From: Oculina patagonica
Taxonomy: Eukaryota
Direction: 5' to 3'
DNA: 64,000 bases
NCBI RefSeq assembly: GCF_052425735.1
Contig: NC_135758.1
Span: 35,650,001-35,714,000 of the forward strand
The position numbers and the translations under genes were made by a program. The notes beneath the pieces were generated by a model. That model searched no databases. It had not been told where the DNA came from and worked only from the letters and a program-made list of their open reading frames with translations. Positions 1,926-38,613 of this stretch are shown here, piece by piece. Each line of letters begins with the position of its first letter. The stretch's first letter is position 1.

Positions 1926-2156
1926 TTATACGTTTTCAAACAATTTGCCATCACTTTTTCTAGCGCCAGCGTAAAACTTCGACAGAACCTTGGCCAAAGC
2001 GGTTTTATCTTGTGGTTCCTCCAGGTTCTTCTGCCTCAAAAAGTCATTCAGAATTTTTACATTTGTTTTTGTTGTTCTCTTGGTGTTTTTAGAATCTTTA
2101 TTCTCGATCAAAACTTTCAATTCCTCTTCGGAAACGGAGGCGAATCGCTTAGCCAT
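1926..2156 (-). pseudogene. Fragment of a Crypton-type tyrosine recombinase (N-terminal region only)
   Basis: RFASVSEEEL..KNTKRTTK..LSKFYAGARKSDGKLF resembles the N-terminus of animal Crypton/DUF3504 proteins. No catalytic domain follows. Confidence 0.6.
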
Positions 2157-2967
2157 ATTTTCAAACGTTTGAGAGCACTACACGGACGAGGGGCTTGGAA
2201 ACTAGGCGGACTTTGAACTCGACATGATAACCCAATATCTGCTGCAGATATTGGGTTATCATGTCAAGTTCACATGCTACTGTATATTGACTGAATGCTC
2301 TCGACCAATCACATGATTCAAAGTAATTCTAATGTATAATAATAATCTATTACTGGATTATAATAATCTATTACTGGATTATAATAACCCTATTATAATC
2401 TATAAATATTATTATAATCCACGGATTAATATTAATCCGAGTTGTCCTGTGTAAACCGGCCTTTAGCTGACTGAATGTGATCAATGTGAAAAGCACGTGA
2501 TCGGAGCGTGACTAACGCCGGTGGTGGCGGTGATTTCGGCCTCGTAGTGTTTGATAGATGAAATTAAGTCGTGCTCAGGCGTGCTGTTGTTAACGCTAAT
2601 TTGTTTATCATTTGGATGTATTACAAAGCACTAATTTCTGTTCCCTCAGGAAAAAGTTAGTTTTGTTTCCCGCGACTTCGCCTCGTAAAACATCGAGACT
2701 TTCGGGAAAACAAAACTTACTGTTTTCATCTGGACCAGACATAAAGTGTAAACTGTACTGTATATTGAAGTGCTGTTGTACATTTAAACGACCGCGATAA
2801 CTTGAACCTTGTTTCCACATGTCTCAACAGAAAGAAATCGGGCAAACTCGCGTTTTTCATGTCTTTTTACGATTAATATTCAGAACGAGCAGTTGGTCTC
2901 TTGTTGTACCCATACTACCTTTCGGTCTTGTCTTTTGAAGCTTTGGTCGGACGACGTTAATTGAAAT

Positions 2968-3365
2968 TAGCCATGTTCGAAACGAGCGGGGGACTGGGTA
3001 CGAATATTTAATATCGATAGGATTGAAAAATTGGGCCTGTCATCTGAAAGAGCATCCAAAAATTAGTTTATTTACAGAATTTGATTAATATTGGTTTAAA
3101 CGCATAGGTATGGTTCACTTTTAGAAATTGCTAAAATAATAGAGCTTAGTATGGATTGGAGGGACAGCTGTCCTCCATACTAAGCTCTCTTATATATTTT
3201 AACGATTTTTAAAAGAGTACCATGCCTTTGCGTTCAAACCAATAACTCTCAAATTTGGTTGAGTTACTAACTTTTGGATGCTCTTTCAGATGACAGGCCC
3301 AATTGTTCAATCCAATCGATATTGAATATTCGTACCCAGTCCCCTGCTCGTTTTGAACATGGCTA
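2968..3365. mobile_element. Foldback (almost fully palindromic) MITE
   Basis: tagccatgttcgaaacgagc...ctgtcatctgaaagagcatccaaaa is mirrored by ttggatgctctttcagatgacagg...gctcgttttgaacatggcta. The arms pair up to a loop near 3165. Confidence 0.8.
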
Positions 3366-3483
3366 ATAGCTGTAACTATATTCTATGTTAAATAGATCAG
3401 TAACGATAACGTTGTTTTGCCTTTTCTAAATGATATTTATTGGCATTTCAAGAACAAAATACATACAGTTATAAAGCGTACTA

Positions 3484-3741
3484 AGGGCTGACCTTTTAAA
3501 TTTTGAAGGGGAGTTGGGCAATTACGAAAAGAAATTCTTGAACTGAACACGAAAAGTAGGAGAAAAAAAAAACGTGCACAAGCAAGCACAGAATAAAAAA
3601 TCAAGCATGGTGCAAAAATAAAATCTTGCAGAGGGTTCTGTTGGTAAAATAAATTCTTGCAAATACCAATGCTGAAAAAATTCTTACTCAGAAAATATTG
3701 CCTAATTTCGCCCCCCTCAAAAATACAGATGGTCCGTCCCT
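3484..3741. mobile_element. Short MITE with AGGG...CCCT termini (Harbinger/Zator-like)
   Basis: taagggctgacc..ttttgaagggg at the left and cccctcaaaaat..ggtccgtccctaa at the right. A-rich interior. Confidence 0.5.
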
Positions 3742-5006
3742 AATACATTCATACAATTAACTACTTTTTTATTATTCCACGTTTACGCCATTTCACTATT
3801 ACCGTATTTACTCGAGCAAAAAACATATAACAAATCATATAACAAACCTTATATGAGCCGGTAAAACACTGTAATACAGAGCAAAAATACGATCGGAAAG
3901 CGAGGAAGCGAAAACATGGCCGGACTTTACTTTACGATCTAAACTTTGACTTTGGCGTAAAATGGCGTAATTGTGGACAGGAGCCCATCATCATGGGCTC
4001 CTGTTGTGGAATAATAAATCCCTTATTAGATGGTTTGACATATAATACGCGCGGACATTTTGCTCATCGAATAAGGTGTATTTAAAAACTAACTTGTACA
4101 TTCATTGCAATATATTACATTAGTCGGGTACATGGATCTTGGAGTATATAATAATAGGCAGAGCAAATGATTTAATAACTGACGGTTTACCGAAAAGCCT
4201 GAAATTGAAAAGCCTTCACTCCTTCAAACAGTCGCATCTTCCAAAAGGTAGTTAAAACTGTTTTGAAACTTTCAAATATACTATCCAGGTTTTGCTTTCA
4301 ATATAAGGTATCATTATACGATGTCCTTTTGATGAAAATGTATCAATTTTATGCCGCTGTCGTTGGTTGCATGCAATTTTGTTGTTATGGTTATAAACGG
4401 CAATTAGAAAACACGCTTGCTTTCACTTTTTTCCCCTCATTATAACCGTCACTTGAAATAAATTGTGTTTGTTTATTAACAGCATAAATTATAGACCACT
4501 TGCTCTTTTTTTCGATTAAATCCACTCAAAAAGGGGCTAACGTTATTTGTCATTTCCATACCGTTCAATTAACTTGAATTAACTTCAAGATATCGATTTA
4601 CTCGCCTAAACCGGTTGTTTGATTAATACTTCAATTACTTTACACATAAATTCTGATTAAATGAAGTTTTTCATATGGGAGGATTTGCACTAATCATTTA
4701 CACGTTACATATATGTTTTTAATATTTTTGACCAAGCACACTGTTAGTTAAAACACCGCAGCAATATAATTATTTACAATGAAGTTTAATTTAACCATTC
4801 AAAAAAGCCACATGACTAATCTGCTCTTAACATTAAATTAACGTTTTAGTTAAGTTTTATCCTCAGTTCAGTTGAAGTAATGATCAGTTCCGTATAACTA
4901 ATCACATCGATATATCCTAAAACAAGCATTGATAAGAATGATTTTCGATTGGCTGTAGACAATAATTAAGTATTTGCTGGACAAAGGTTTCCTTTATCGC
5001 TTTTAA

Positions 5007-5351
5007 GGGGGCTTTGTCATGGATTTTAACTGATTTTCGGACAGCCAAAATTTATATCTGTGTCGTAACAAACCTTAAAATAATGGTCCGTTTTTATTAA
5101 CAATTGCTATATTAGAGCACTGAAACTGTTAACAAGCGTCTTTGGCTGTGGATGGCTCCGATGGAAATGGATTGCAACTGGAAAAATTAAGGCCTAACTT
5201 TTCAAGATGTTTCCGAGCGTCTTCGAAAAACGGGTTTAAAAGCCGTAGCTTGATTTCTATCCGCAAATGAAGGTTATATTTTTCTTTAGATGTTCAAAGA
5301 TAATGTTTTTTGTTAAAAATCTGCGAGATCCCCGCGACGTACGTAGCTCCT
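5007..5351. mobile_element. Kolobok-like non-autonomous element with TTAA TSD
   Basis: ttaa|gggggct... and ...gtagctcct|ttaa. Short imperfect TIR. Confidence 0.5.
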
Positions 5352-5774
5352 TTAATTACGTTCGGACTGGTTGGCGGGATTATCTGCGTTTTTTATAACT
5401 GATCTGATGTGATTAAATTATTTTTTGTTTTACGACTATTAGAAAACAGCCCTATATAGTTTTATTTTAATTAGGGAGAAAAGTACGGAATCTGTCTTAT
5501 GAAAACCGCGCAGTTAATTTAATTTAATTTCTTTTGGTTAGAAGCGCTACCCTTAGCGTGGACGTATTATAATCTTTTCCACTACATTTCAATCCCGAGT
5601 TCTCGAACCCTCGGTTTCTCGAAAATCCCGATTTCTCGAACCAATTTTCGTTTTCCTTGAATAGTACTTCTCTGTTATTTTATCCCCGATTGCTCGAAGC
5701 TCCCGATTTTTTTGAAGCAGGGATTATTCTTTACTCTCGTGAAGTTTTGCCGCGTATTTTACAGCAATCATTAA

Positions 5775-6298
5775 CCCTATTCAGACCGGGGGGGGGGGGG
5801 GGGGCTTTTGAGGCCCGCGCTGACTTTGAACTTTTATTACTTTTTTGAGACTTAACCAAACGCTGCCAAACTTTCTGAGTTTTCCTAAAATTTATCTGGC
5901 AACAATTTGGTTGGGTTGGATGATGTGTCAGGAACTTGACATCACCATGGCAACGACATTTTGACAGGCATGTTTTCCCAAATTTGCAATTTTGCGTGTT
6001 TCTGTTACATTATAAAAATCAACTTAAATGGAATCATTTTTACATTTTTACGGATTTAAAGCACATTTTTATTCATTTTGAGTACTTTGCAGTGATTTTG
6101 GGTGGTTTTCTGGCATTTTGGAAAAATTTTGAAATCCAAGATGGCGGATCCAAGATGGCGGCTGTTTTGACATCATGATGTAATTGTCACGTGATGTGAC
6201 GTCACTATCCCACGTGACGTATATCAAAAGAATGAGTTTCGGACGTACAATACATCTTATAAGTTTCATGGTGATTGCTTAAATATTCTGGAATAGGG
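5775..6298. mobile_element. piggyBac-like non-autonomous element (degenerate)
   Basis: ttaa|ccctattcagac followed by poly-G at the left, and ctggaataggg at the right. The right TTAA is not preserved. Confidence 0.4.
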
Positions 6299-7054
6299 AC
6301 AAGCTTGCAAATACGATAAAGAGACACTTGGAGGACAAAACACGATAGATTTAGGAGGGGCGGGGTGAATAGCGATGCGCAAATCCACCGATCCGTTTTA
6401 TTTTTTGGTCAAATCCGTCAATCCTCCACTATTTTCGTTCGTATCCAAATCTGCATTACTTAAATAAATTTGTGTGGTTAAGTTTCACTGCTTATTTGCT
6501 TGTTTCTGCGACAGTTCCGCCGACAACCGACGAAGACCGACCAAAGTGATTCAAACTTTGTTTAGTATCCACGATCCAAACTTCCTGATTAAAGAGTCCG
6601 GAATCCGGGCCAAAATTCTCAGCTAATCCGCAGCGATCAGCTGTACTTTTTGAGCCTAGTGGTTTCAGTGGCATTGTCGCATGCTCAAATAGATCGATCT
6701 TGTCGAATTTCTATTCTGCTGACGTTGTTGTTAAAAATGTATACGGCAAAAATGGCAAGTTTCGTCAAGTTGGCAGCGGGGTTACAATTATTTTGCTTTA
6801 CGTGGCGCTCGTTTTTTAGGAAAATCTATAAGACCAGTTTTTACGCAGAGGGAAAAGACACAAATTTGCAGTTAACAAAGAATCTGCCTTTACAAACTTC
6901 ACTATTTTCCTGTTAAAATTTTTTTTCTGGTAGTATCCATGTACTGTAAAAATTTAGGAAGATTTCACCGAAGGAAATTGAAGAAAATCGCACTTAAAGC
7001 CACGTCAACACTAAAAGACGCATTTGTTTCAGTAGTCTTACACTCCTTCTTTAA

Positions 7055-7506
7055 GCGTGCCAAAATATGTCTGGAATGTGTGAGCCTGGAGACAGACCGC
7101 AGAACCACGTAATGGGTTCCAGTCACGGAGAACTGTCTTGTTAGGAACACGCTCTGTAAGACTGCTGGAGGGCACTCAGAAATGGGGAGAGAGGAGGCAG
7201 CGACGAAACGACATGTAGTGAGAGAGGAGAGAGGAGCCCGATGTGGAGCGACTGGTTCGGAGAAGGACGATCGCACGCCCAGGAAAGAGGTCCGTGACGA
7301 GACGCAACTGCAAGGCAGACGATACAATGTGGGAGGTGAGACACCTCAACGCCAAGCGCCGAGCGACGCACTCCAGTGGGGAAGTGGGGGAGACGGTGGC
7401 GAGGGGACGGAGAGTGGGGACGGGGCGAGGGCGGCCCACGTGGAGATGGGAGGGTGGGGGAGACAACGGACAGGGGGGGGAGGGACAGAACCCAGACAAG
7501 GCACGC
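7055..7506. mobile_element. TTAA-flanked non-autonomous element with a purine/GC-rich interior
   Basis: ttaa|gcgtgcc..tgtctgg at the left and ccagaca..ggcacgc|ttaa at the right. Composition shifts sharply relative to the flanks. Confidence 0.6.
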
Positions 7507-8131
7507 TTAATAAGAAGGGTGTAATTTACGACTTGAACCCACTCATCATTTTAACAGAGATGATTGTAGAACACTTTTTCATCATTGCTGATTGCATTTG
7601 GTAAGTTTTAGCGAACTGGGACTTAAAACGAATGCAAAACCACATTTCAAAGTATAACACTAGCGCGCGCCACATCATATGTGACTACCCTATGGAGCAA
7701 CCTTCACAACTCACTGTCATAAAATATATTAAGCAAAATGGTTAAAATGAGCCAAGCAAACAAAACTTGGCGTTTGATACACCTAGAGCAGTTTTCTAGT
7801 GACTGTTCTGAAAGCAAACCCAAAGTAATCAAAACTGGACAATCAGAACAAACAGCACAATGAACCAATCAGAACTTAAAGCAAAAAACGTGTAACCGGC
7901 GTCAAGCGCGGGAAAACGTACGTGTTTGGGACAATTAGTCACTACTGGTTTTGATTATGTTTGAAACTGTTCAAAGCAAACGCGAAACCAAATCAACACG
8001 TGACTGATGTCTAAGGCCAATGGAAAACTGCTCTAAATGATCTTAGAACTAAAATGGAATTGGATAGCTAGATTAATTGAAGTTGCCTGACCTTTTAGAT
8101 GTTCATGACGCCCAGCTTGGCCTGGCAATCT

Positions 8132-9075
8132 TTACAACTTTGTGTTAAAACCTGTCAGTTCAGGTTCTGGCGTTATCGTTTTTCTCGATGACGTTCGTAG
8201 CGATGTCTTCGGTCTTCGTTTCGTTTCCTGCTGACATTTGTGCTGGCTGCTGGTCATCTCGAGAAATACACGTTCATTGAAGGACTTTGATCTTATCAAT
8301 CCACGGTTATGATGCTGGGAGCCTTTCGGTTGAGGGCTCGAGGAATCAGAATGAAGAAATGCCTGGAAACTTAAGGCTTGAGGCTGGTCGCTGGAGTTTT
8401 CGAGGTGACATTGGCTTCCTTATTGTGTCAAGCCGCTTTCCAATATGATTCCTGGTTTTCTTGCAAAACCAGTCAGATCACGATCTTGTATTTTCTTGTT
8501 GCTTGACGTGGATTGTACTCTTTTCATCGCTTCCTCTCGAGATTTGTGCTGGCTGTCGATCCTCTCGAATAACTCTCCTTCATCCAAGGACTTTGATCTC
8601 ATCATTCCACGGTAATGGTACCGGGAATCGTCAGGTCCTTTAGGGTGAGGGCTTAAGGATTGAGACTGAAGTAATGCCTGGAAACTTAAGGCTTGAGGCT
8701 GATCGCTGGTGTTTTCGAGCTGACTTGGCTCCTTTTTCGTTTCACGCCGCTTTTCAATTTGATTCCTGGTTTTCTTGTAAAACCACTTTCTGGTATTTTC
8801 TCGTTTCTGTACGTTGATGGTGATGTCTTTGGTCTTCTTACCGCTTTCTGCCAAGATTGGTGCTGCCTGCCGACCATCTCAAATAATACACGCTCATCCA
8901 AGGACTTTGATCGTACCATTTCACGATAAAGATGTCGCGAATCTTTTGATGGAAGGCTTGAAGAATGAGGCTGAACTGATGCCCGGATTTTTGAAACATG
9001 AGGTTTATCGCTGGTGTCTTCCTGATAACTTCGTGTTCCTTTTCCTGTCCACCCGCTTTTAACTTTGATTCCAGG
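8132..9075 (-). repeat. Three diverged tandem ~300-bp coding repeats forming the GPCR C-tail
   Basis: Each unit encodes KPGI.L.SG...E.(T/S)SD.P...RSKS(L/F)(D/N)E...F. Copy 1 is in frame, copy 2 follows a 1-bp deletion (8724/8725), and copy 3 follows an in-frame TAA (8420-8422). Confidence 0.85.
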
Positions 9076-10284
9076 TTCTGATGTGATGACCCTAGGTTGA
9101 TGAATATCGACGCAGATCACTCTGTTTGTTGCGCGCGATGGAGTTGACGCACGCCTTCCCCGCTCCACTTGCCCATGGCTCCTTCGCTGATCAGTGCCTC
9201 TGAGGTTTGTAATCGAGCCGCAGCATCGAATTCGGGATCTTTGTATGCGGTTGTTCTCCGGGTTATCTTCCACTGACTGGACAGAACCAGCGCGTCGGAC
9301 GTTTTTCTTTACGTCGGCTGTAGTCTTCTTCTTCATCTTTAACATCTCCAGCATCGCGTTTCTATAGCGGTGGTCCCGGTAGCAATAAAGAACAGGGTTG
9401 ACAGCGGAGTTGAGCTGCGCAATCATCATCGACCAACGGAAATATGAACTTCTACGAAGTGCGGGATATGCGTCTCCGAAGAAAATGTAGACGGATGAAG
9501 GGATGAACGAGATTAACACTGCAGCTGTCAGCATGGCAGTCGTTTTTGCGACTTTGGTGGCGAGCTTGGCTCTGATGAGAGAACGGACTTCGGTGATTTT
9601 GTTCATGTCTCGTTTGCGCACACCAAGGTAGACCATTATGTAGAAATAGCCGACTAGTATTATGCACACAACCCCAGGGACAGAAGCAACCATGTTGATG
9701 ATCACAAGGTATTCGTGCGGGACACCAGCGATTCTCATTATGCGTGGTGGGATTGCTATGAACACAGTTACCAGCCATGCAATTCTTGCATACTTCGTGA
9801 CACGACCTTTGGTAACAATGCTTTTATATTCTCTCCACTTTCTTACCGCCACGTACCTCTCCCAAGCAATCAGAGCTAGGTGATACGTGGACGAGCAACC
9901 TCCGACATACAGTGTCATATCATTTACGAAAGCGATTCGACAAAAAACGCTCGGACTCAAATACTGCTTGAGAAGAATAAACACATCTAAACAGATAGTC
10001 AACGGCATGGAGACAGCGCCCATCAGAACATCTGCTACTGCAAGGCTTGCCAACAGAATGTTCGAGTTGTGTTCTTTTAACTCTCGTCTCAGTTTTACTG
10101 CTACGATAACTAAGATGTTAAGAAGAAGGGCAATGGGGCAAATAATGATTGTGATCGCGGCGGCAATCTTGAACTCGGTTCTGTCGCTTAAAACCCAAAC
10201 ATGTATTGGTTTACCTGGGCAAGAAAACTCGGACAGCACCTGGCTTGAAGTATTCGCAGACAGATCTGTATTGCTGGAGTTCAT
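8686..10284 (-). CDS. Intronless class A (rhodopsin-like) GPCR, orphan, with a long repeat-containing C-terminal tail
   Basis: Seven hydrophobic helices. TM1 N (LLNILV), LASLAVAD, WERY, FIP in TM6, NSAVNPVLY, helix 8 YRNAM. N-glycosylation sites at the N-terminus. Confidence 0.93.
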   Translation of the reverse strand: MNSSNTDLSANTSSQVLSEFSCPGKPIHVWVLSDRTEFKIAAAITIIICPIALLLNILVIVAVKLRRELKEHNSNILLASLAVADVLMGAVSMPLTICLDVFILLKQYLSPSVFCRIAFVNDMTLYVGGCSSTYHLALIAWERYVAVRKWREYKSIVTKGRVTKYARIAWLVTVFIAIPPRIMRIAGVPHEYLVIINMVASVPGVVCIILVGYFYIMVYLGVRKRDMNKITEVRSLIRAKLATKVAKTTAMLTAAVLISFIPSSVYIFFGDAYPALRRSSYFRWSMMIAQLNSAVNPVLYCYRDHRYRNAMLEMLKMKKKTTADVKKNVRRAGSVQSVEDNPENNRIQRSRIRCCGSITNLRGTDQRRSHGQVERGRRASTPSRATNRVICVDIHQPRVITSEPGIKVKSGWTGKGTRSYQEDTSDKPHVSKIRASVQPHSSSLPSKDSRHLYREMVRSKSLDERVLFEMVGRQHQSWQKAVRRPKTSPSTYRNEKIPESGFTRKPGIKLKSGVKRKRSQVSSKTPAISLKP

Positions 10285-22043: not shown

Positions 22044-24363
22044 TTCAGTTGGACGTTTATCACTCAGCTTAGATAAGCGGCGACGTGTTGAACTGTGAGA
22101 GGGAACAAAGATCAAGAATATCCAATGCGCTTTTTCAAAGTATGATTACCAACTCTGAATATGCTTTCTACAGTTTATATTGCCGCTGTTTAATAACGTT
22201 AGCGTAAACGTGCTTTGCTGAAATGACGTTTATGCGCAAGTTTCAGTTTCCATCCTTGTCAGGACATATGACAATCAATCGCCGGATAAACGTAATAAAT
22301 AATTAAACACATTGAATTGGAAAAACATAGTTATTGTCTGTTTCGCTTATAATGAATTAATTAAAGGTGAGAGTTTTAACTTCTACGTTCTGTTTATTGT
22401 AATTTTATTTATGCAATGGCGTCTCACAGAGAAAACAACCTTTTTCGCTAACGTTTTAAAGTATGATGGGAAATATTTTTTAAAAGGAATGAAAATGTCC
22501 AAACGCTTCAAGATAAACTGTATATTTATGCTCATCGGTTTATCAGTTTGTTGATAAAGCTGTTTATATAAAGCACGTTTCTTATTAGATTCTAACAAAT
22601 ATACCTATAGTTGTATTTACATTCTGGATAGAAAAGAGAGACAGTTAAGGTCAAACATTTTTGGTAATGCGCATGACACTAAGTCATGAACTCGAAGAGA
22701 GTTAGCTTAAAACTAATTTTCTATTTTACAAGTCGACTAGAATTGTTTATTTTTCCTTCTGCTAAATTATGAATGATATAATTATAATGAACATTTTGCG
22801 GACATGGCCGCAGGAGCATTGCCAAACTATAAGCTTCGTCATACACGTAGTTGGATCCAATTTTGCGTCCCGCTCCCCTGGTCGCGCTATTTGTCAATAC
22901 CCTAAGATATCAGTAATGTTTTGAACATTCATGCAGGGAAGGAAAATATGTGGAAAAGAGTTGTTATGTTTATGTTAGAGTTTAATCATGCTTAAGGTCA
23001 AAAATGGCCTATACAATTCCAGACCCTCTTACACTTGCCCTTGAGCTGGCTTATAATAAATGGGGAAGTTAGAGCATATCTCCGGCATGTAAATATTTCA
23101 TGTTGTTCTTCTCAGTCACGAATTGTCGGTGTTTCACGTTTCATCTCAGGTACGTGTTGTAAATATTTGTTTGGGAAACGCATAAACTTTGGAAGGTTCC
23201 CGCCAAGTGGATGAATAGACTCAGTATTATTAATATTGACATCTACAGCTATATTTATTAACTTTGCCACTACATTTTATTCACTTTGAATACATGCTGT
23301 TACTTTAATTTGTCATGTTGCACTAAATTGAATGTTGAATAAAATTAAATGAGAACCGGTTTAATTTGCTACCAACTAAAGAAAAATAAGTGTTTATTAA
23401 AAAATCAGTGCCGTCGTGGGCGAGGAGGTCGTGGCAGGTGGCCCAGCATCAATGATCAAAAGGCCTATTCGATTTAATAAAATTCTAAATAACTTGGTTT
23501 TGAAACCGTGATGGGGAATTAATAACATCGAGCTGCGTGGGATTTGACGAAACAGATTGTCTTACCCCGTTCTTACCTCTTTCCCCGTGGCCAAGTTTGA
23601 ATTTTAGTACAAATAAACATGCCTATTTTCGTGACGTTTCAAAAATTCATCGGGGAACGTGTTATGCCATTTTTCGCTCACGTGACTTGACGGTTCTATG
23701 CTAAGGTAACCATGTTTCGTCAGGCTGCAGTAGCAAATTTTAGAATTCTTTCCCTTGATAGGAGCGGTTCTAGTTATTTGGTTGTTTTTGTTAAGTTTCT
23801 TTTAACGTTGTTTTTTTCTTTTTTTTTTTCGAGTTCCTACAGTCAATCTAAAAGACAAAGTGAGACCGATTTAAATAAAAAATAGTTAAAACCTTATATC
23901 AAAATATACCTTATATAATCTTATTAACAACGAAAATATGCTAATGAGAGACTAACGAGTTATTTATCTTCAATCAGGCAGCTTTTGCGAAGGTCTTAAT
24001 CTATGGTAGAAATATATCAAATCGTGTGGAGGTTTATCGATTTTCGTGCAAACCGAGCGAAAAAAAAAGTAACAACACTTTATAGAAATGCTTCATGAAA
24101 GAGGTACATAGCCTTAGTAATTTAACTTGCTCGATATAAAAATTTAAGGTTTGCCGGAGCAGAAAAAAGGCAAAAAAGCCATATGGCTCATTAACTGTAT
24201 ACAAAATGTAGCTTTGGTAATATATAGTTATATGTAAAAAGGAAACTGTATAACTGTTTCGGTACGAAAGACCTTATAAGTCACAACATGATGGCTGGGC
24301 AACTTAATCAGTTTTCTCTTTAAAATTATCTTCCTTATTTCATAAAAGAGGTTATTAACAGTA

Positions 24364-25245: not shown

Positions 25246-26363
25246 TTTAGGTGGACTTCTAACACTCAGCTTAGATAAGCGGCAATCTCTTGGACTGCGA
25301 GGAGAAGAAAAATCAAGAATATCAAATGTGCTTTATCAAAGTATTATCAGGAGCTCTGCGAATGCTTTCTTCAGTTTGTATTGCCGCTGTTTAATACGTT
25401 TCCGTCAGCGAAAACGTGCTTTGCTGAGTTTCAGTTTCCAGTTCAGTTTTCATCTTTGTCAGGACAGATGACTCACAATCAATCACCCGATAAACGTAAT
25501 ATAATTAACCATTGAATTGGAAAAATAAAGTTATTTTCTGTTTCGCCTATAGTGAATTAAAGATGAGAGTTTGAACTTTTTAATACGTTCTGTTTATTGG
25601 AATTTTAATTTAGGCAATGGCGTCTCACAGAGAAAACGAACTTATCGCTAACGTTATAAAGTCTGGAGTATGATGGGAAATATTTTCTGAAACGAATGGA
25701 AATGTCCAAACGCTACAAGATAAACTGTTTATTTATGCCCATTGTTTATCATTTGTTGAAAAAGTTGTTTATATAATGCAAGTTTTTTATTAAATTGTCA
25801 CGAATATACTTTTAGTTGAATTTTAAAGTCTGGGAAAAATGAGAGGCAAGATCAAACCTTTTTTGGTAGTTAAATTGAGACAGTAAGTCATGAGCTCGAA
25901 ACCAGTAAGCTGAAAACTAATTTTCTGTTTTACAATTCCACTAGAATAAGCTTTTTTTGAGGGACTGGTCGACTAAATATTATAGCGGCTTAAACACCTT
26001 ATTCTCTTTTATCCGATATTTTTTTATTACAAAAAAAAAAAAAAAAAAACATTTTGCGGACACTACTGCCGCAGGAAGATTGTCAGACTAAACTTCCTCG
26101 TCACCCCGCACGCACTTTGAATTACGTTGCGCTGTTTGTCAACTGATATGTCTGCTTAATTAAGATATCAGTCATGCAATTCCTGGTTACCAAGATAAAA
26201 TAAATGAAAGAGAGAAGTCTGGCCATATAAGGGTCTGGCCATATAAAATGGCCATATATTTTCAGACCCTTTTATAATATTACGCCGGCTCTTGGGCTGG
26301 CTGATAATGAACGGGAGCATATCTCCGGCACTTATTGTAAATGTTTCATTGTGTTCTTCTCAG

Positions 26364-27315
26364 CACAGGCGGCCCAAGCTCACAATAAGAGGAGTTTATA
26401 CAGTAATTCATATGTTAATTGTATGCAAAAACGTGACTCTCGCCTTGCACCATATGGAGGTGTTGTGTTACGGCGGGTTGCACTTATGTTTATGTAAAAG
26501 CCAAGCTCTCGATGATGAGATTTTACTCTAATTTAAAATTACCCAGAAATATGTTGCAATTTTTAAATAAAAATCAATTTTTCCTATCGCGCCGTCTTAT
26601 TTGATGTAAACAGACAATTAGCCGATTTATTTGTGCGGTAAGCCTGACATGTTCGTGCGCGATAAGGCTAAGGGCTCCGCACGCGAGCGGTGTTTTGTTA
26701 CATGATGACCGTTGTCCGTTGGGTCGAATGTAAATTTCAAAAATATAAGGATTTGTATTGAACGAAACGAAGGTGGTTAGCAAGCCAAATATGTTTGAAA
26801 ATTTTCAATAAAAATGACTTACCTTGCCTCTACGACGCTGTTGGTGAAGTTTGCGTCCTCTCTGAGCAGATCGTTGGCGATTTAATGCCATTTTAGCCGA
26901 TTTTTTTTTTCGCGCTGTCCCCTCTCTACCAAAAGAAGGAGAAGGCTGTACACTAGTTCCTAAGGAGGCATGCCTTCTGGAGCGAAAAATCCTACTTCCA
27001 AATTCTCCAGAGACCAAAAAACCTCGACAATCTTGCAGCCCGAAGGTTGCTCTTTGCATGGAATGCCACTGCTAAACAATCCGTACATTTTCCATCACAC
27101 AACTCTACATTTTTCTTCTCGAAATCTAGACACACGTTCGCTCGAAGCCTGGCTTAGTAGCCAAGTCTCCACGCAAAAGTAACTCCTCCAGGGACGCCGA
27201 GGGTCCGATGTCGAGCAACAAACTACCTACCGGCCACTGTACCCTCGGAGAAATTCGACTCCGGGTCATTGTCTTAAATAGCCAATCGCAACGACGCCGG
27301 GTCGTGTTTACGTCT
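26364..27315 (+). repeat. Left long TIR (alpha variant)
   Basis: Reverse complement of 35673-36753 apart from indels. Its outer ~520 bp matches 37405-37923. Confidence 0.92.
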
Positions 27316-27863
27316 AAAAAAGATATAAATAAATTCTCGTCTGCACGTGCCCTTGCCCTCATGTTTCTTCAAGTTCCTAACATATGGTTTGACCTTCAAC
27401 GCCTACAATTATAGTTCTGGCCTGATATTTGTTTCGGCAAAATCTGCAATGACTTTGAATAAGCAATAAACAGTTCTTCGCTGTATTAACAATGGCAGAT
27501 TTCTTTTATCATTATCTTTTTGTTCATCGTGATTTTCTTCTTATCAACAAGTTTTTGTGACGTCCGAACGGTTGCCGTATATATACCATTGCGTGTAAAG
27601 GTTACAAAAACAAAACAAAAAAATTTGGGACGGATAGCTGCATTTATGTATCTGTAATCTTCTCTTTACTTAAAGTACGATATCGCACAACGGATTTCCT
27701 TTACTAGTGGATTACATTTTTCGCGAAATGTGAGTTACTGACACATGTTTACTTTAAAGTTAGCTGATTGTTTTTTTTGCATTCTTGTGGACTTCAGATG
27801 TTATCTTATCGCATTAAGAGTCGAAGTAAACTTACCTCTGTTTTTACATTTCTGTAATCATAG

Positions 27864-30861
27864 GATCCAGTTAAATCCTGACCAAGCTGAGATTGTTGAA
27901 TTTGCAAAACAGGGGCATAATCTTTTGATTACTGGCCAGGCAGGTGTCGGGAAAAGCGAAGTAGTGAAAAGAATAATCCACAATGCAAAAGAGCAGGGTC
28001 TGAAAATAGCAGTGGTTTGTTCAAGTGGCATTGCATGCCAAGTCTATGAGAGTTCTGTTGCTTCGACTGTCCACTCGTACTACGGGCTCCAAACAGCAGA
28101 TCTTCCGTGGATTCAGGTCATAGACAGAGCAGCTGAAAACTCCTTGGTCAGGGAAAGAGTGATGTCTGTGGACGTAATCATTTGGGACGAGGCTAGTATG
28201 TCGAGTCAAAGAATGTTTGAACTCGTCAATTGTTTGCACCATCAACTTGCAGACGAATTGAATTGCCAACTCCCCTTCGCAGGAAAACAACTCATTCTTG
28301 TGGGGGAGTTTTTGCAACTGCAACCCGTCCCAAACACGTTTGACGAGGGCAGTTTTATGTTTCTGTCGCCCGTTTTTGCCGCTTCGATTTCTCACCGCTT
28401 CGAGCTCACCGAGGTTATGCGCCAATCCGATGCCGAACTTTTGTTCGCTATATCTGACCTTAGAATGGGTAAATGTTCGGCAAGAACCGAAAATTTTTTG
28501 TTGGCGCTTTGCAGGGAACTGCCACCGGTTATAGCGAATAACGCCACGCATATCTTTTTTAGAAAAATCCCCGCGATGCTGTTCAACCAACGACGGATCG
28601 ATGAACTTCCAGGGGAGCTGGCTGTCTTTGATGCCATCGTTGAAAATGAGATGTCCGGGAGCATGAACTGGCCAGGCCAGCGTCGCTTACAGTTGAAGCA
28701 CAACTGTAAAGTGTTTGAAGTGTTTGATCAGCTTTCACAGAACGAGTCTTACCTTGCCACACCCTCTCCGGATTGTTATGACGCATGTAGAGCTTATCTA
28801 AAATCGTTGAAAAGGGGCGATTCGACACTAGCTTTTTTGCGCCAGAAAAACAACGCTATCGATTATTTGTTGAGGGCCGACCGTGAAAGTCAGTTGCACG
28901 CCTTTATCAACATCCTTTGGTACCACGCGTTTCTCATCATTAACGATCATATCGTGGAAAACGCCCACGAAATCGTTGCAAACGTTGGGCGCCAACACTT
29001 CACCGAAGCTGCCTCTCAAATGCACGTACTTTTTCAGAGTGCGGACTTTGCCAGTTATGTCTGTGCCATTTTTGATACCAGTACGCATGCAGCCACAGAA
29101 AGAGCAGTTGCAGTACAGCTTTCGACCTCGATTTATTGGAAATTCGTGCGTCATCTGGTTTCCCTTGTTAGACGGCGACGTGAAAATGACGAAATTCCAT
29201 TCAGTGTGGAGGAGATGAGCAGTGTTGGAAAAGCGAAGGTTCGCCATGTGGGAGGATGGGCAGTGAGAAAGATCCTCACTCGTTACCGAAAGTATGTACA
29301 GAGAAATATGTTCTCTACCAACAGTGCAACTCAGTCCAATGTGGAAAAACAACAGAAGCTCTGCGAGTTGTTAGAAGAAAACATCATCATCCCTTACGCC
29401 AAGTTAGAGGAGGTTACCAAGTACCCCGAGACCCTCGAAGTCACTGAAGCCCGACAGTACAGAGGACGTGGCTTGCTCCACATATCAGACGAGGCGTATT
29501 TGTTTTTCATCCATCTAGAAGGAAGAAGAGTTGAGCTGTTGAACCAACAAAGATTACAGGAAGAGATGGAGAAGATGGTGGAGACAGCAATGAGAGAGTT
29601 GGCAAGAGACGGAACTATTAAAGTTAATTGGCGAAGATGCTTTGTTACAAGGGATGCCGAGGGAAACACGGTAGGTGCCTTGTCGAGATAAGTTTGTGTT
29701 TCAGGCTAACCTAGCACGAAACATGGAGTATTACATAAAGTATAAAACGCCGCTGACAAATTCACCGGGCGCTGGTACGTCTGTAGTTTCGCTTTGAGTC
29801 GAACTTTCTCGTGATTTTTACTTGCTGCTTTTAGTTTTCGTGTTCTTTGTCCATTTTATGTTAAGGGATATCGCATCCCTTCCCTTTAAACATGAAATTT
29901 CAGGAGAACTTGTACCACTATATAAGGACAGGAATTCACATGAGCGCACAGCCTATTTAAATTTAGATCGACCTTGCTAAGTTTTGACTACATAATTAAC
30001 ATGGCGTGTCGCTAATTCACGTTTCATCTTTTTTTTATGTTTCAAGGATCTGCTGGAGACGATGCTGGGGAACCTCTTATTCTATTATTTAAACATGGGA
30101 ACCTCCCAGTTCTTGAGAGACTTTAGACGCGCACACCAAGTCAAGAAAAGCGTCGAACTGCGGAAAAGAGTGCTGCAACGTCAAGAACGCACTAAGGAAA
30201 GGACTGATAAATTGCCCTTCGAGGTAAGTGTTAACAATGACATACGATGCAAATGGAATCTGTTTTGATCGTATGCAACTTAACGTTTGCATGCAATTAC
30301 GTAATATTCAGAGGAGGAGCCCAGGAGGGGGGGGGGGGAGTTGGGGTGTTTACACTAATCATAATGAATGCACCATCATTATTGCAAGTTCAAAAAGAAA
30401 ATTTTAATTACTGAAATACACATAAATACATACATATAAGTGCAAACATGTCGACCTGTTATTTTGACTGGCTACTCCATCTATATAGTACTTTTTGCTG
30501 TGTTATTTGTTCTGTTTAGGAAATTGTTAAAGACAGAAGCAACAGAAAGCATGTATCACATGGTAGACTGGCTGGTTTTATTGAAAAACATAAGGATGCT
30601 GGATTGGGCCGAGCATACCTCAAGTCTAAGCTGATCTTACTGTGTGAAGCATACAACGTTCAAGTTTCTTCAAGATCTACTAAACTGGAGATTGCGAGAA
30701 AGTTGGCCGAAGCAGTCAGGTTGAACACCTACATACCATTCATTTCACCAGTCGATGACTGACAGTACAGAGTAGCTGAAAGTGTGGACTCACATGGACA
30801 CATTAGGATTTGTCTCCGAATGATGAGACCATCTGAACCCAATGAGCCGTCACATGAATAA
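27864..30861 (+). pseudogene. PIF1-family helicase (N-terminal half) fused to a P-transposase-CTD-like domain and a SAP-like motif; exons ~27864-29670, 30047-30223, 30520-30861; 5' exon(s) not resolved
   Basis: Motifs GQAGVGKS (I), SSGIAC (Ia), STVHSYYG (Ib), IWDEASM (II), LVGEFLQLQPV (III), LTEVMRQSD (IV), LQLKHNCKV. Motifs V and VI are absent. GT-AG introns are in phase. TGA at 30760-30762 precedes a further 32 open codons. Confidence 0.8.
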
Positions 30862-31030
30862 TTTTGCAAATCGTAAAAAGAGGTAACAGTACAGTACTAC
30901 CCTTTATGTCTTTGCACAGTTATAATGCCTGGTTTAGCGTGCAGCCACCTCCAGCATTTCAGTTATCCATTTGTAAACTTTTGGATCTTAGATTTTGTAG
31001 CAAACAATATCAGCTTACTTGAGACTGGAG

Positions 31031-34000
31031 CTACTTACTTTTTCCTGCATTGCTTTTTGGGCTTATTGTGGTTTGGCCCAGTCTGATTGAATTCTGTGTG
31101 GACTGCTGTTGCAGGAATGTTGGATTATCATTCTGACCATTGCAGGAACGAATTTGGCAGAAATGATTTTCAACACAGTCCTGATTGACGATAGAAGGCT
31201 TTATCACAGGATTTGGAAATTTAGTTAGTTTGATTGTAATAAGAGACTGAAAACCAAGACACATCGACTGAAGATCAAACCACAGTTTGCTTGATATAAA
31301 TTCATTTCTTTTTTCTTTAGTTTGGGCATCCCACTCTACTATCAACTTGTAAAACGCATCCAGCTTCTTAAGCCTGCCATCGCTTGTGGTGTTGATGTAT
31401 AACTTGTCATTAAATAAGCTTGTTATCTCGCTTGTGTGCTGCAATAGTGTTATTGCTGAATTAAGAGTACTTCCATCCTTTCCAGTGGCATTGAGATGTT
31501 CCTGGTACTTCTGCAATCAAAACAGTTCATCTCATGTGGTTATCAGAACTTATCGCAATCTATGATGAAAGAAATGTGTTAGAACACAATAGTGTTCACA
31601 CTGCGAAAGCACAGAACTGAAAGCAACTGATTGGTTTTTAATAATGTTTAACTTCCTCATTTCTAATCCAAAAAGGTGTCAATATGCCATTTTTTATCGC
31701 CTCATGACAATAAGTGTTTGTCAAAGAGACACTCGATGTCAAGGTAACCTCAAGTGGTTGTCTTGAACTGCATGTTGACATTTAACACTGACTTTGGCTA
31801 ACAGCTCAATCGATGGATCAGTCAATCAATTAACTACAAACCTGCATAAGAAACAGCATTTTGCAGTCCAGTACATCCTCAGCAAGATGATTTCTCATTT
31901 TAGCAGCTGAATCCAACTCAAAATGTTGTGGGGTTAAGCGCTCATGCAGGGGCAGTGAAAAGCACTCTTGATCCCAGTTGAAAGCTTGTCGGAATTGCTG
32001 CCAAGTTACTGCTTTCCGTCCCAGTTTAAGACATCTAGGCTTGCCTTGGACATTGCTCTTTTGGACATTGTTGCGGATTTTCTTTATGTTGTGCTGTACA
32101 TGTAAGTTAAATATTAGCAACCTTCAGTTGATTGTTAGCTCAATAAATAATTTTAATGTTTGCTTTATTCCAAACATTGCACTTGCAACTAACCTTTGGA
32201 TCCATGATGAACACCATGGGGCCTCCTGTGTAGATATTGTGTGTAACAAATTTGTCCTCAACTGGATCTTTGTCTTTGAAATGAATTTTGACAAATTGCC
32301 TGTTACAGTCAGCACCATCCATGACACACCAGTACACCCTATATACATAATAATTGAATTAAAGTTTATTAATGTATTAATGTTTAAATTACATTACTTT
32401 GTTTAGATGCTGTTGCATCTGGTTGAGTTGGACATTTTCAAAGCAGATGAGTTGCTGATTAAACCACTTTAGACATGTCTAACATATAAGTAATTTCACA
32501 TTCTTATAAAGTGTAGATACTTTTCACTGTTTATTATAAAACCCACTAGATGTGGTAAATAGACTTCAATTTTGAATTTACAGTACGATTCATTAGTTTA
32601 GTTTAATTGAAGAAACATTTAATTACAGTACATGTAGGTTATCAGATGAAGAGTGCTTGCATTAGTAAATGTAACATTTGCCTGATGACTCACACAAATC
32701 CAATTTCTAGCATCTTCAGAACTCCCTCCCAGAAGAGGAAGTACAGATCACTTGGAGTACAATCTCCTGATGGGAATTGAGCAATGGGAAATCGAAACCC
32801 ACAGTCACTCACAAATATGAACTGTAAGACATGTGTTGCCAATTCAGGTTCCTCAGTTTTACCTAAGAAGAAAATAGTATTGATATTTATAACGGTTGTA
32901 ATGTAGAGCGTTAATTAGCTGTTAAATAAATGCAATGCCATGTTGTATTGCATTTTTTTGGTTTAAGAACAAGGTAAGAGTTTGTATAAACTTGTTTAAC
33001 TTAGATAATCAGATTATATAACTTATACCACTTATACAGTTAGGATTTACATTGTTAAATCCTTTTCCAGAGGAATGTGCATTATAGTCCCTTTAAAGCT
33101 CCTGTGTAAATTTTTCCTTAACAGAGTTAACTAATTGGAAGTAATACGTACCTGAAAGACTTCTCATTAAATCGTGCCCCTCACCAAGGTCTACGAAACC
33201 AATGAGCCTGTGTTTTCCATTTTTAATGGCCATCTCCAGGTTTTCCTGTTGCTTTTCAAGTAAACAAAAATAATATACAGTGATCAGGTTACTCATTGTG
33301 CCAACAGTTAGGCTAGAGATGTTGTGTTTCAGGGCTGTCATTAAGGGATGATTTCATTTCATTTTACTTGATGTTATGGGTGATGGTTACTGTAACGAAA
33401 GAAATTGGTAACAATTTCTGCAGTTAAAGCAATAAAAGCTAATAAAGGCGATGAGTGTTTCAAATTTGAGGAAAGTCCTGTGTATTAAGTCAAGGAAGAC
33501 AATGCTCCAACTCTGTGTCAGTACAAGATTATTTATTGTGATGTTATTAGTCTGGAGTACCTGGATTTTCATCTCGTCTATTGCAAATCCGCCCCAGAAA
33601 TCTGCTTCCTTTAGCCCTTGTTTCTTAGCGTCATTCAAACACCACAGGAGTGTTTTGTCATTCCATCCCGATGTCTCCTCCACTCTGTTTTTATTCTGTC
33701 TGTTTGCAAAATTTAAGATAGAAAGCAGGGGAACAATGTGATATGGTTTTTGTATCTGTCATTTGATGGAATAAGTTCGTGATTGGTTGGGTTTATTAGA
33801 TTTCCTCAAACTCACTTGAGTGTGTTTATCTGCACATGGACGGGGAAAATTGCCATTAATACTACTATTAATATTATTATTATTGTTGTTGTTCTTGTCG
33901 TGGTTGGTTTTTGTTTTTTTGTTGTTATCTTTAAATAAAAGACAATTGCCATGTGGAGTCTTGTTCATATGCATACATGAGTCGTTTTCAATTCCCCGGG

Positions 34001-35605
34001 AGCCATTTATACAGGCAAACAATGTCACGGTCCTGAGTAAATGGCATGTTATGTACAGTACGATTTAAACAATGGTGTAATTTACATTGTGGTATGCTAG
34101 GTAATCCCTACCTGATTGTTTTGTTGCTGGGAAGAATGAGGACTTCCCTAAGTGGATCTAACACACGGGGGTTCTTGCAGTACAGCTCGATACACAACCT
34201 CATAATCCTGGCAAAAGTAAAAATGTTACCTTTAGTATTGATATACATGCAACGGATTGGATTAAGTATGTAAGGCAAAGATTCGGAGCATCCTGACCTG
34301 CAGAGTACTTCATAGTAAATAAGGGTCTAAGAGTTAAACAAGAAACTTACTTCGGATGCCAGCGATAGCCATTCTTTTTTGTGCGAGCCAACTTGTTTTG
34401 CTGCTCCCAGAGACACTTCATATCCTCGGGTATGTTGTCTTTTGGTAGACTATTCCATATGGCAGACAAGTCTTCGTGATCTTCAGCTTCCATTTCAATA
34501 GCCTCTGACATAAATTTCTCACGCCAATAATTCTCTCGGTTTTCTGCATTTCTCTTTGCGTTGCGTTCCTGTGCCAGTTGTACAATAACTTCTTCCTTTG
34601 TAAGGTATCGCTTGTTGGTTGCTGGGTGAATGCTGCCCCTTTCAAGTTTTCTCTTCTTCCTCCTGTTGTCAATTAACGTGACGAAGGTGACTACAAGTCA
34701 CGCAACAGTTCCCAGAGGAAGTCAGAACTTGACATGAGGATGAAAATGCTCTGATTTCTGAGGTTTTTGACTCGGTTGTCCGTAGATCTTGGAAAGACCC
34801 GCTTTCGTGTGGGAGTAAAGCTACCACAGCCTCGTCCTCTGCAAGACTTATTCCTTGGCATATGGTAGAGTGTTCTAAGAATGCTAAAATTGTGTGTACC
34901 TGGTCCTTCAGAGGACGATTATGCAGGTCAACGATCTTGATGTCCTTCCCGATGTCGATCTCACACCCATGAGATGAAATCGTGTAAGAACGCTCACTGG
35001 AATCGGATATGTTAATTGAAAGTTCCGTGGTCACTCGTTGCTTTTTAAAAGTCCACTTTTCGTGACGAACGAAGCTGATCTTGTTAGGGCGATCCGTAAT
35101 TTGTATCCAACTATCGGGTAGTTTTATTTCCTGATCGCAGCACAGTTCGAGGGAACCTTCAAATGAATTCTCAGGATTGATGGCCTTTCGTTTAAGATTT
35201 AGGTAAAAGGATCGTCGTTGCCCTCGTGGACCTCTTTTCACAAGTTTAACTTTGTCACCCCACATTTCTTTAACAAGAAGCCCCAAATGCTTGTTATTCA
35301 AGGGGTTAACGTTCTCTTTCACTGTTATTGAATCCTCGATCAAATCCGGTACGGCCAGCAGAGCATTCTCAGCGATTTCGTACCTAAACAGTAACCTAAT
35401 AATCAACGAAGAAAAGTGATTTATATTATTTAGGTGCACATTACACACGGATCGGGTACAGCTTGTTAACTTCAGCGATGAACATCACCATAGTAAATTT
35501 AACTTACCACGTTTTCCAGCTCAACGTGTTTGGGATCGTTTTTATTTGAACCTCACTGTCTCGGCCGCCGAAAGTTCTTTTCTGTGGTGTAGACAACATG
35601 TTCAT
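31031..35605 (-). pseudogene. P-element-superfamily DDE transposase with an N-terminal RFX-like winged-helix domain; 9 exons (35605-35508, 35383-34351, 34207-34112, 33699-33561, 33245-33152, 32862-32694, 32338-32194, 32093-31842, 31510-31031); one frameshift near 34670
   Basis: WEQQ..GYRWHP, LYCKNP..LILPS (HTH region), FAIDEMKIQ (D1), VMDGADCN (D2), DPKHNIKKIRNN (DxxH), KMRNHLAEDVL, NQDCVENHF (E). All introns are GT-AG and phase-compatible. About 830 aa if the frameshift is corrected. Confidence 0.9.
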
Positions 35606-35672
35606 AGCAAACGGAACTCACAAGAAGGTAGCGTGATCCAGACGACCGTTCACAATTTTTATATTTTAAAAG

Positions 35673-36753
35673 AGACGTAAACACGACCCGGCGTCGTTGC
35701 GATTGGCTATTTAAGACAATGACCCGGAGTCGAATTTCTCCGAGGGTACAGTGGCCGGTAGGTAGTTTGTTGCTCGACATCGGACCCTCGGCGTCCCTGG
35801 AGGAGTTACTTTTGCGTGGAGACTTGGCTACTAAGCCAGGCTTCGAGCGAACGTGTGTCTTCAAACGGTTAGTCACGGCGGTTGGGAAATTCAGACGGCT
35901 AGATTTCGAGAAGAAAAATGTAGAGTTGTGTGATGGAAAATGTACGGATTGTTTAGCAGTGGCATTCCATGCAAAGAGCAACCTTCGGGCTGCAAGATTG
36001 TCGAGGTTTTTTGGTCTCTGGAGAATTTGGAAGTAGGATTTTTCGCTCCAGAAGGCATGCCTCCTTAGGAACTAGTGTACAGCCTTCTCCTTCTTTTGGT
36101 AGAGAGGGGACAGCGCGAAAAAAAAAAATCGGCTAAAATGGCATTAAATCGCCAACGAACTGCCCAGGGAGGACGCAAACTTCACCAACAGTGTCGTAGA
36201 GGCAAGGTAAGTCATTTCTTTTTGAAAATTTTTTCAATATATTTGGCTTGCTAACCACCTTCATTTCGTTCCATACAAATCCTTATATTTTTGAAATTTA
36301 AATTCGACTCAACGGTCATCATGTAACAAAACACCGCTCGCGTGCGGAATCCTTATATTTAGAAATTTACACTGCACACAACTGTCTTACTGTCATCATG
36401 TAACAAAACACCGCTCGCGTGCGGAGCTCTCAACCTTATCGCGCACAGACATGTCAGGCATACCGCACAAATAAATCGGCTAATTGGCTTCAAAAATCGC
36501 CAAAACACCACGAATCGAGAAAAAACACATCAAATAAGACGGCGCGATAGGAAAAATTGATTTTTATTTAAAAACTGCAACATATATCTGGCTAATTTTA
36601 CATTAGGGTAAAATCACATCATCGAGATCATAAGTGCAACCCGCCGTAACACAACACCTCCATATGGTGCAAGGCGAGAGTCACGTTTTTGCATACAATT
36701 AACATATGAATTACTGTATAAACTCCTCTTATTGTGAGCTTGGGCCGCCTGTG
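35673..36753 (-). repeat. Right long TIR (beta variant, with an extra 40 bp and an internal ~77-bp duplication)
   Basis: Inverted match to 26364-27315. Its outer ~625 bp is nearly identical to 36781-37405. Confidence 0.92.
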
Positions 36754-36780
36754 GAAGCACCGACAATCTGTCACTGAGAA

Positions 36781-37923
36781 CACAGGCGGCCCAAGCTCAC
36801 AATAAGAGGAGTTTATACAGTAATTCATATGTTAATTGTATGCAAAAACGTGACTCTCGCCTTGCACCATATGGAGGTGTTGTGTTACGGCGGGTTGCAC
36901 TTATGATCTCGATGATGTGATTTTACCCTAATGTAAAATTAGCCAGATATATGTTGCAGTTTTTAAATAAAAATCAATTTTTCCTATCGCGCCGTCTTAT
37001 TTGATGTGTTTTTTCTCGATTCGTGGTGTTTTGGCGATTTTTGAAGCCAATTAGCCGATTTATTTGTGCGGTATGCCTGACATGTCTGTGCGCGATAAGG
37101 TTGAGAGCTCCGCACGCGAGCGGTGTTTTGTTACATGATGACAGTAAGACAGTTGTGTGCAGTGTAAATTTCTAAATATAAGGATTCCGCACGCGAGCGG
37201 TGTTTTGTTACATGATGACCGTTGAGTTGAATTTAAATTTCAAAAATATAAGGATTTGTATGGAACGAAATGAAGGTGGTTAGCAAGCCAAATATATTGA
37301 AAAAATGTTCAAAAAGAAATGACTTACCTTGCCTCTACGACACTGTTGGTGAAGTTTGCGTCCTCCCTGGGCAGTTCGTTGGCGATTTAATGCCATTTTA
37401 GCCGATCGCCAACGATCTGCTCAGGGAGGACGCAAACTTCACCAACAGCGTCGTAGAGGCAAGGTAAGTCATTTTTATTGAAAAATTTTCAAACATATTT
37501 GGCTTGCTAACCACCTTCGTTTCGTTCAATACAAATCCTTATATTTTTGAAATTTACATTCGACCCAACGGACAACGGTCATCATGTAACAAAACACCGC
37601 TCGCGTGCGGAGCCCTTAGCCTTATCGCGCACGAACATGTCAGGCTTACCGCACAAATAAATCGGCTAATTGTCTGTTTACATCAAATAAGACGGCGCGA
37701 TAGGAAAAATTGATTTTTATTTAAAAATTGCAACATATTTCTGGGTAATTTTAAATTAGAGTAAAATCTCATCATCGAGAGCTTGGCTTTTACATAAACA
37801 TAAGTGCAACCCGCCGTAACACAACACCTCCATATGGTGCAAGGCGAGAGTCACGTTTTTGCATACAATTAACATATGAATTACTGTATAAACTCCTCTT
37901 ATTGTGAGCTTGGGCCGCCTGTG
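36781..37923 (+). mobile_element. 1143-bp internally deleted derivative of the P element (beta end plus alpha end), in the opposite orientation
   Basis: CACAGGC...GCCTGTG termini. The beta arm (36781-37406) joins the alpha arm (37405-37923) at a 2-bp AT microhomology. Confidence 0.9.
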
Positions 37924-38073
37924 GTGCTTCACGTTTAATTTCATCTCGCGAAATTGCTGTAAATATTTGTTTGGGAAACGTCCAAACTTCGGAAGATTCC
38001 CGCCCAAGTGGGTGAATCGACTCAATATCATTAATATTGACAACTACTTTTTTAAAGTTTTGCTATTACATTG

Positions 38074-38573
38074 NNNNNNNNNNNNNNNNNNNNNNNNNNN
38101 NNNNNNNNNNNNNNNNNNNNNNNNNNNNNNNNNNNNNNNNNNNNNNNNNNNNNNNNNNNNNNNNNNNNNNNNNNNNNNNNNNNNNNNNNNNNNNNNNNNN
38201 NNNNNNNNNNNNNNNNNNNNNNNNNNNNNNNNNNNNNNNNNNNNNNNNNNNNNNNNNNNNNNNNNNNNNNNNNNNNNNNNNNNNNNNNNNNNNNNNNNNN
38301 NNNNNNNNNNNNNNNNNNNNNNNNNNNNNNNNNNNNNNNNNNNNNNNNNNNNNNNNNNNNNNNNNNNNNNNNNNNNNNNNNNNNNNNNNNNNNNNNNNNN
38401 NNNNNNNNNNNNNNNNNNNNNNNNNNNNNNNNNNNNNNNNNNNNNNNNNNNNNNNNNNNNNNNNNNNNNNNNNNNNNNNNNNNNNNNNNNNNNNNNNNNN
38501 NNNNNNNNNNNNNNNNNNNNNNNNNNNNNNNNNNNNNNNNNNNNNNNNNNNNNNNNNNNNNNNNNNNNNNNNN
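38074..38573. other. Assembly gap (500 N)
   Basis: Run of N. Confidence 1.
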
Positions 38574-38613
38574 TCGCCAGGCCAGCCTGCATGTATAATG
38601 CAGTTTTACATTA

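Follow-up and report, generated by a model that had tools for sequence, protein, structure and literature searches.

A probable 27-bp micro-inversion with exchanged target site duplications between two copies of a P-like transposon in the coral Oculina patagonica

The analysed window was a stretch of 64,000 nucleotides from Oculina patagonica (contig NC_135758.1, positions 35,650,001 to 35,714,000), and positions are given in its numbering unless a genomic coordinate is stated. Two oppositely oriented transposon copies (labelled E1 and E2) were found among copies of a rhodopsin-type receptor gene that lacks introns, one copy on either side; the gene copies were arranged in repeat units of about 3.2 kb in both orientations. 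The occupied locus was located on a 20-kb assembly contig (18057-38073) between two 500-N gaps, the right one at 38074-38573, and the contig ended at 38073, 150 bp past E2. This contig matched, at 95-98.5%, an inverted stretch further to the right (G000:C1:35716961-35728232, window-equivalent 66961-78232). The matching stretch contained an empty form of the insertion site and one extra 3.2-kb repeat unit, and the 28 kb that separated it from the contig were unique sequence. Either the contig and its inverted match are two haplotypes, one of them an unpurged haplotig, or the GPCR gene cluster underwent a recent inverted duplication. Just past the gap, a pair of inverted repeats of 267 nt (38605-38871 and 41252-41518), 95% identical and 2.4 kb apart, was also detected, and is probably another inverted-repeat transposon.

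E1 was a DNA transposon of 10,390 bp on the forward strand (26364-36753). It possessed long inverted ends (26364-27315 and 35673-36753) of about 950-1,080 bp, which were 88-100% identical. An ORF on the forward strand (27745-29691) encoded a PIF1-like helicase of 648 aa. A second ORF, on the reverse strand (31031-31516), matched the RNase-H C-terminal domain of transposase (PF21789, 31.4 bits, the Pfam cut-off being 24 bits), and the same residues matched the Drosophila P transposase structure 6P5A weakly (E = 0.16). Ten other minus-strand ORFs had no Pfam match, PF21787 had no match inside the element, and a genome scan for the transposase N-terminal domain detected nothing within it. Two features of the P superfamily (P, Galileo and 1360), namely target site duplications (TSDs) of 7-8 bp and terminal inverted repeats, were present in the family. 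On the basis of the single Pfam domain match and the length of the TSD, E1 is likely to be a P-type element. No second copy of its interior (30500-35600) was found above about 80% identity in the 529-Mb assembly, and E1 is thus the sole full-length member of its family there. Public sequencing data were searched as k=31 Logan contigs from 20 runs, and the stretch was present in runs labelled as coral metagenome; interior sequence identical to that of E1 was present in runs X1 and X3 and absent from X5 and X16 (other organisms).

E2 (36781-37923, reverse strand) was 1,143 bp long and corresponded to an inverted E1 lacking E1 positions 517-9764 (9,248 bp). It was composed of two parts. Arm B (36781-37406) corresponds in reverse complement to arm A (36128-36753, forward strand), the final 626 bp of E1, and is joined to arm C (37407-37923), the reverse complement of the first ~517 bp of E1. 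The deletion joint had a 2-bp microhomology (“at”, 37405-37406) and was unique to E2. In the preliminary description of this locus the facing arms had been reported as near-identical over about 625 bp, in good agreement with our measurement of 626 nt with 2 differences between arms A and B. Between the left arm of E1 (L) and arm C, 519 positions contained a single substitution and a 1-bp indel in a homopolymer. Over their whole shared length, E1 and E2 therefore had 4 differences in about 1,145 positions, a divergence of 0.35%. The next-best genomic copies were 96-97% identical to arm B and 99% identical to arm C. When the four differences were polarised against other copies, two were derived in E2 and two in E1. 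Their positions (36227, 36306, 26806 and 26861) all fell within 180 bp of the place of the E2 joint (p of about 0.01 for random placement). As a source of the differences, mutagenic repair synthesis in E2 is only half supported, since they cluster near the joint but E1 carries the derived state at two of them.

Given the small number of differences, the distinct joints of other deleted copies and the single-copy interior of E1, E2 belongs to the E1 lineage. It was derived from E1 or from a sister or allelic copy of E1. The possibility that E2 is a member of an older, non-autonomous lineage was rejected, as the similar 1.1-1.2-kb copies on C5, C8 and C9 each have an internal joint of their own and are only 91-97% alike. 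The locus had initially been read as two insertions, each with its own 7-bp TSD. Both duplications were indeed present, but the two copies are not independent, E2 being an internally deleted copy of E1. The joints of independent internal-deletion derivatives elsewhere (L033, C5:21458721-21459874; L034, C8:1458372-1459597; L036, C9:24587738-24588816) and that of E2 (window 37396-37410) all fell in one region of the long inverted ends, no more than about 70 bp from a common point and beside a T(10-11) run. This shared region has the appearance of a hotspot for the arrest of repair synthesis.

A spacer of 27 bp (36754-36780) separated the two copies. The right tip of E1 (...ggccgcctgtg) ended at 36753 and the left tip of E2 (cacaggcggcc) started at 36781, and all four tips of the two copies shared one perfect 29-mer beginning cacaggcggccc. 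Target duplication 1 had its outer copy, ttctcag (26357-26363, forward strand), directly before the start of E1 at 26364, and the flank to the left of this copy matched the empty site. The spacer consisted of three parts, all in reverse orientation: gaagcac (36754-36760), which abutted the right end of E1 and is the reverse complement of target duplication 2; a 13-bp core, cgacaatctgtca (36761-36773); and ctgagaa (36774-36780), which abutted the left end of E2 and is the reverse complement of target duplication 1. Past the end of E2 at 37923, the outer copy of target duplication 2, gtgcttc (37924-37930, forward strand), was followed by acgttt... and the remainder of the right flank. The layout of the locus, as read from the window sequence, was thus ttctcag[E1]gaagcac-cgacaatctgtca-ctgagaa[E2]gtgcttc. 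Two independent reverse-complement matches of 7 bp are expected by chance with a probability of about (1/4^7)^2 = 4e-9. The exchanged and inverted TSDs reported earlier for 36754-36780 were confirmed in every letter. Their likeness to those of Galileo was confirmed as well, the 7-mers being swapped exactly as at Galileo breakpoints.

An exact empty site was found outside the window, 29 kb to the right and in inverted orientation (G000:C1:35717100-35717126, minus strand). It reads ttctcag-tgacagattgtcg-gtgcttc and matches the reverse-complemented spacer at 27/27 positions. Each 7-mer occurs once in it, and its 13-bp core, of which the core in the window is the reverse complement, has the opposite orientation to the window spacer. 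About 88 bp of its flanking sequence were identical to the left flank of E1 and 146 bp were identical to the right flank of E2 (37931-38073 on the forward strand, 100% identity). The 27-mer had only two occurrences in the genome, the empty site and the spacer, where it is reversed relative to the flanks. Since the exact empty site carries the opposite orientation, the spacer is inverted relative to the ancestral state. Whether the empty site is allelic, on an unpurged haplotig that was placed close by in inverted orientation, or belongs to a young inverted paralogue, it shows the ancestral state. A product predicted from the empty site and E1 (ttctcag, E1 and the inverted 27 bp) had 0 mismatches to the window over 10,424 bp. 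The preliminary description had relied on 23109-23135 (forward strand) as the empty paralogue of the flipped spacer. That site, an older paralogous empty site in a neighbouring repeat unit of the GPCR gene cluster, does match at 23/27 positions, but the site outside the window is a much better one.

The empty form was also recovered in contigs from two independent public runs, X3 (376 nt) and X16 (1,335 nt). In X1, the right-flank contig stopped exactly at 37923, where the filled and the empty forms diverge. The empty-site contig of X3 (window 36754-36780, reverse strand, and 37931-38070, forward strand) started at the first 31-mer that separates the empty from the filled form, as would be expected if the junction of ttctcag with the element were present in X3 as well. 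This contig start was not counted as evidence, because the same contig shows no break at the right junction.

The TSD length of the family was surveyed by reading 72 element ends from the genome. A TSD of 7 bp was perfect in 20 of the 28 other elements with both ends read, matched at 6/7 positions in a further 3 and was absent from 5. The five elements without a TSD were short members with intact tips (L041, C2:28530091-28530703; L043, C4:14436282-14436841; L046, C7:5682571-5683169; L069, C4:16169018-16169408; L076, C8:16793981-16794652). None of them had a reverse-complement flank partner among the 72 ends read, and they are possible relics of flanking deletions or of other element-mediated rearrangements. 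The survey for other inverted pairs with swapped TSDs, which the preliminary description had suggested, gave none in these 72 ends, among which the window pair was the only same-chromosome pair with mutually reverse-complementary flanks on the same side. The left-end flanks ATCAGAG (G000:C4:16169018) and CTCTGAT (G000:C9:14911806) are mutually reverse complementary as well, on different chromosomes, and this match of a single 7-mer is probably due to chance.

Taken with the exact empty site, the 7-bp rule of the family upholds the earlier proposal that the spacer was flipped between two 7-bp target duplications, which are 13 bp apart. Fold-back or snap-back repair without a transposase was rejected as an origin, because both 7-mers are duplicated, and at the TSD length of the family. 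We are highly confident that the structure is real, and that the 27-bp spacer is a micro-inversion bounded by E1 and by an inverted, internally deleted copy of E1. The orientation of the spacer was read from a single assembly contig, and a misassembly would reduce the locus to two ordinary adjacent insertions, the true sequence being ttctcag[E1]ttctcag-13 bp-gtgcttc[E2]gtgcttc. The flipped and the unflipped forms have all their 31-mers in common and look the same to short reads or contigs, so the Logan contigs, which show the empty form and graph branch points, cannot phase the spacer. The position of the locus between two gaps, so near a contig end, would also suit an error of this kind. However, the contig crosses a single-copy element of 10 kb with inverted ends of about 1 kb, together with a near-palindrome of 1.28 kb, and the arms retain two distinguishing SNPs. 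A contig like this needs long reads, and the spacer would therefore have been read directly against unique sequence. Misorientation by the assembler thus seems improbable.

Our preferred explanation, to which we assign a probability of roughly 0.4, is that the layout was made by hybrid-element insertion between sister copies of E1. When the ends of sister-chromatid copies at the same site take part in this reaction, identical copies result and the product is strikingly like that of ectopic recombination (PMC2775673). In experiments, P-induced inversions arise mainly by hybrid-element insertion, and no wild inversions that result from it are known (Miller et al. 2020, PMC7642927). Following the logic of the TSDs, E1 would first have inserted at ttctcag or, by symmetry, the first insertion could have been at gtgcttc. 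After replication, a left end from one sister E1 and a right end from its counterpart would have been brought together by the transposase. On the chromatid that donated the left end, the resulting hybrid element would have integrated at gtgcttc, 13 bp to the right, through cuts staggered by 7 bp. One of the two possible integration orientations would yield flank-ttctcag[E1]gaagcac-13 bp inverted-ctgagaa[inverted E1]gtgcttc-flank in one cut-and-paste event, with ctgagaa beside the right end of the inverted copy and gtgcttc outside its left end. Later, the second copy would have lost 9,248 bp through excision and aborted gap repair, as its microhomology joint suggests. The newly made junctions in this model involve one right end (of E1) and one left end (of E2), as expected of a transposase that needs one end of each kind. 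The same element was found on both sides of the spacer, and the flanks showed neither deletion nor duplication; the internal deletion of E2 is an addition to this pattern. Some points stand against hybrid-element insertion. The sequence is equally compatible with reinsertion close by in inverted orientation and subsequent recombination of the arms, the incompleteness of E2 means that a second event, the deletion, must be assumed, and P-type chemistry is itself assumed from one Pfam match and the TSD length.

The same arrangement could have been reached in two steps, if a copy of E1 on the sister chromatid or the homologue had reinserted in inverted orientation at gtgcttc, 13 bp off, and the 626-bp arms had then flipped the spacer by homologous recombination or by template switching during replication, much as Galileo-type ectopic recombination does or as the spacers of palindromes are flipped, the internal deletion of E2 being a separate event. 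Where inverted copies recombine ectopically, their TSDs are exchanged and the copies become chimeric (Delprat et al. 2009, PMC2775673). The exchanged TSDs and the oppositely oriented copies of the coral locus are as expected from this route and as seen at Galileo breakpoints (PMC2775673), and arms that are 99.7% identical and 27 bp apart are an excellent substrate for recombination. P elements prefer sites already occupied by P elements, where they insert in inverted orientation (PMC2577343). The divergence of 0.35% between E1 and E2 would leave time for a flip; as E1 is derived at two of the four differences, the pair is not of very recent origin, and later flips could have taken place. Against this, the route needs one event more than hybrid-element insertion, and it leaves no demonstrable chimerism: each copy carries two derived differences, no possible crossover is bracketed by markers, and in copies this nearly identical chimerism is invisible. 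Arms A and B, 27 bp apart, were also no more homogenised than arms L and C, 10 kb apart, with 2 differences in each comparison, which are small numbers, and this similarity gives no sign of frequent exchange between the arms. The two-step route is the main rival, in our judgement unlikely without being far-fetched. Hybrid-element insertion is modestly favoured over it because it involves one event fewer and because no sign of frequent arm exchange was seen.

Two further mechanisms were weighed and given little credence. Intramolecular replicative (Shapiro-type) transposition, in which the ends of E1 are nicked without excision and attack gtgcttc on the same molecule, would create the inversion and the inverted copy at once when replication passes through the element, and the PIF1-like helicase encoded by E1 may have helped. 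The preliminary description considered this possibility worth attention in view of the helicase. The topology of the product is indeed identical to that observed, but hybrid-element insertion between sister chromatids yields exactly this product too, and needs no new chemistry. Since hybrid-element insertion is a known side reaction of P-element cut-and-paste transposition and gives the same product, no role for the helicase has to be assumed. P-type transposases act by cut and paste (PMC2775673), E2 is not a complete replica, as 9,248 bp of E1 are missing from it, and no second swapped pair was found among the 72 ends surveyed. Replicative transposition is thus very improbable. Cut and re-ligation of the spacer is more improbable still. 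In this scheme, the transposase would have cut at the two facing ends after an inverted double insertion, and the released 27-bp fragment would have been re-ligated in reverse. The facing tips are identical, and donor cuts by the Drosophila P element leave 17-nt overhangs of terminal repeat sequence (PMC2577343), from which the same overhangs would be expected on both sides of the spacer. However, the scheme needs the synapsis of two like ends, both of them right ends, and a fragment of 27 bp is easily lost. It is purely conjectural, and we know of no precedent for it.

Transposon-bounded inversions with exchanged TSDs are textbook examples of rearrangement by Galileo in Drosophila, and the coral locus belongs to this known class. 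What is unusual about it is its size of 27 bp, its cnidarian host and the fact that the two copies are a parent and its derivative. For Galileo in Drosophila, ectopic recombination is, to our knowledge, the only mechanism that has been demonstrated in nature. The coral locus may be the first natural inversion traceable to hybrid-element insertion, a claim we put forward tentatively and at somewhat less than even odds. It is a very clean case, with an exact empty site, a single-copy parent, the parent's own derivative as the second copy and no loss or gain of flanking sequence. It indicates that transposon-driven inversions also occur at a scale of 27 bp, where they are overlooked by surveys of structural variants. 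If the replicative reading were true, the locus would represent a eukaryotic P-type transposon with its own PIF1-like helicase moving replicatively within one DNA molecule.

Bacterial Tn3, Mu and IS elements generate inversions by intramolecular replicative transposition. The coral locus resembles their products in having a second, inverted copy, an inverted segment and a target duplication that is split in inverted orientation. The chemistry differs, and we know of no evidence for a eukaryotic P-type enzyme that works in the bacterial way. A closer parallel in scale is the double P allele singed-weak (Roiha et al. 1988, as cited in PMC2577343), in which, as it is described there, two defective elements are inserted in inverted orientation a few bp apart. 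Unlike singed-weak, where just an 8-bp duplication is found between the elements, the coral locus has two targets 13 bp apart, with the DNA between them inverted. With hybrid-element insertion of P elements, as reported by Gray, Tanaka and Sved (1996) and cited in PMC2775673 and PMC7642927, the coral locus shares the exchange of old and new TSDs, the identity of the copies, flanking DNA without deletion or duplication, and a target close to the donor. In those accounts the process is known from laboratory crosses, whereas the coral case is inferred. The Galileo inversions 2j, 2q7 and 2z3 of Drosophila buzzatii (Delprat et al. 2009, PMC2775673) involve, like the coral locus, elements with long inverted ends and a 7-bp TSD, and the coral element is likely to be of the P type as well. 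In both systems the inverted segment is bounded by oppositely oriented copies with exchanged TSDs, and the uninverted form has a single copy of each target. In contrast to Galileo, where ectopic recombination has been demonstrated and is not one rival among several, where the inverted segments extend over megabases and where the copies are diverged and demonstrably chimeric, the coral host carries an inverted segment of 27 bp between a parent element and its deletion derivative.
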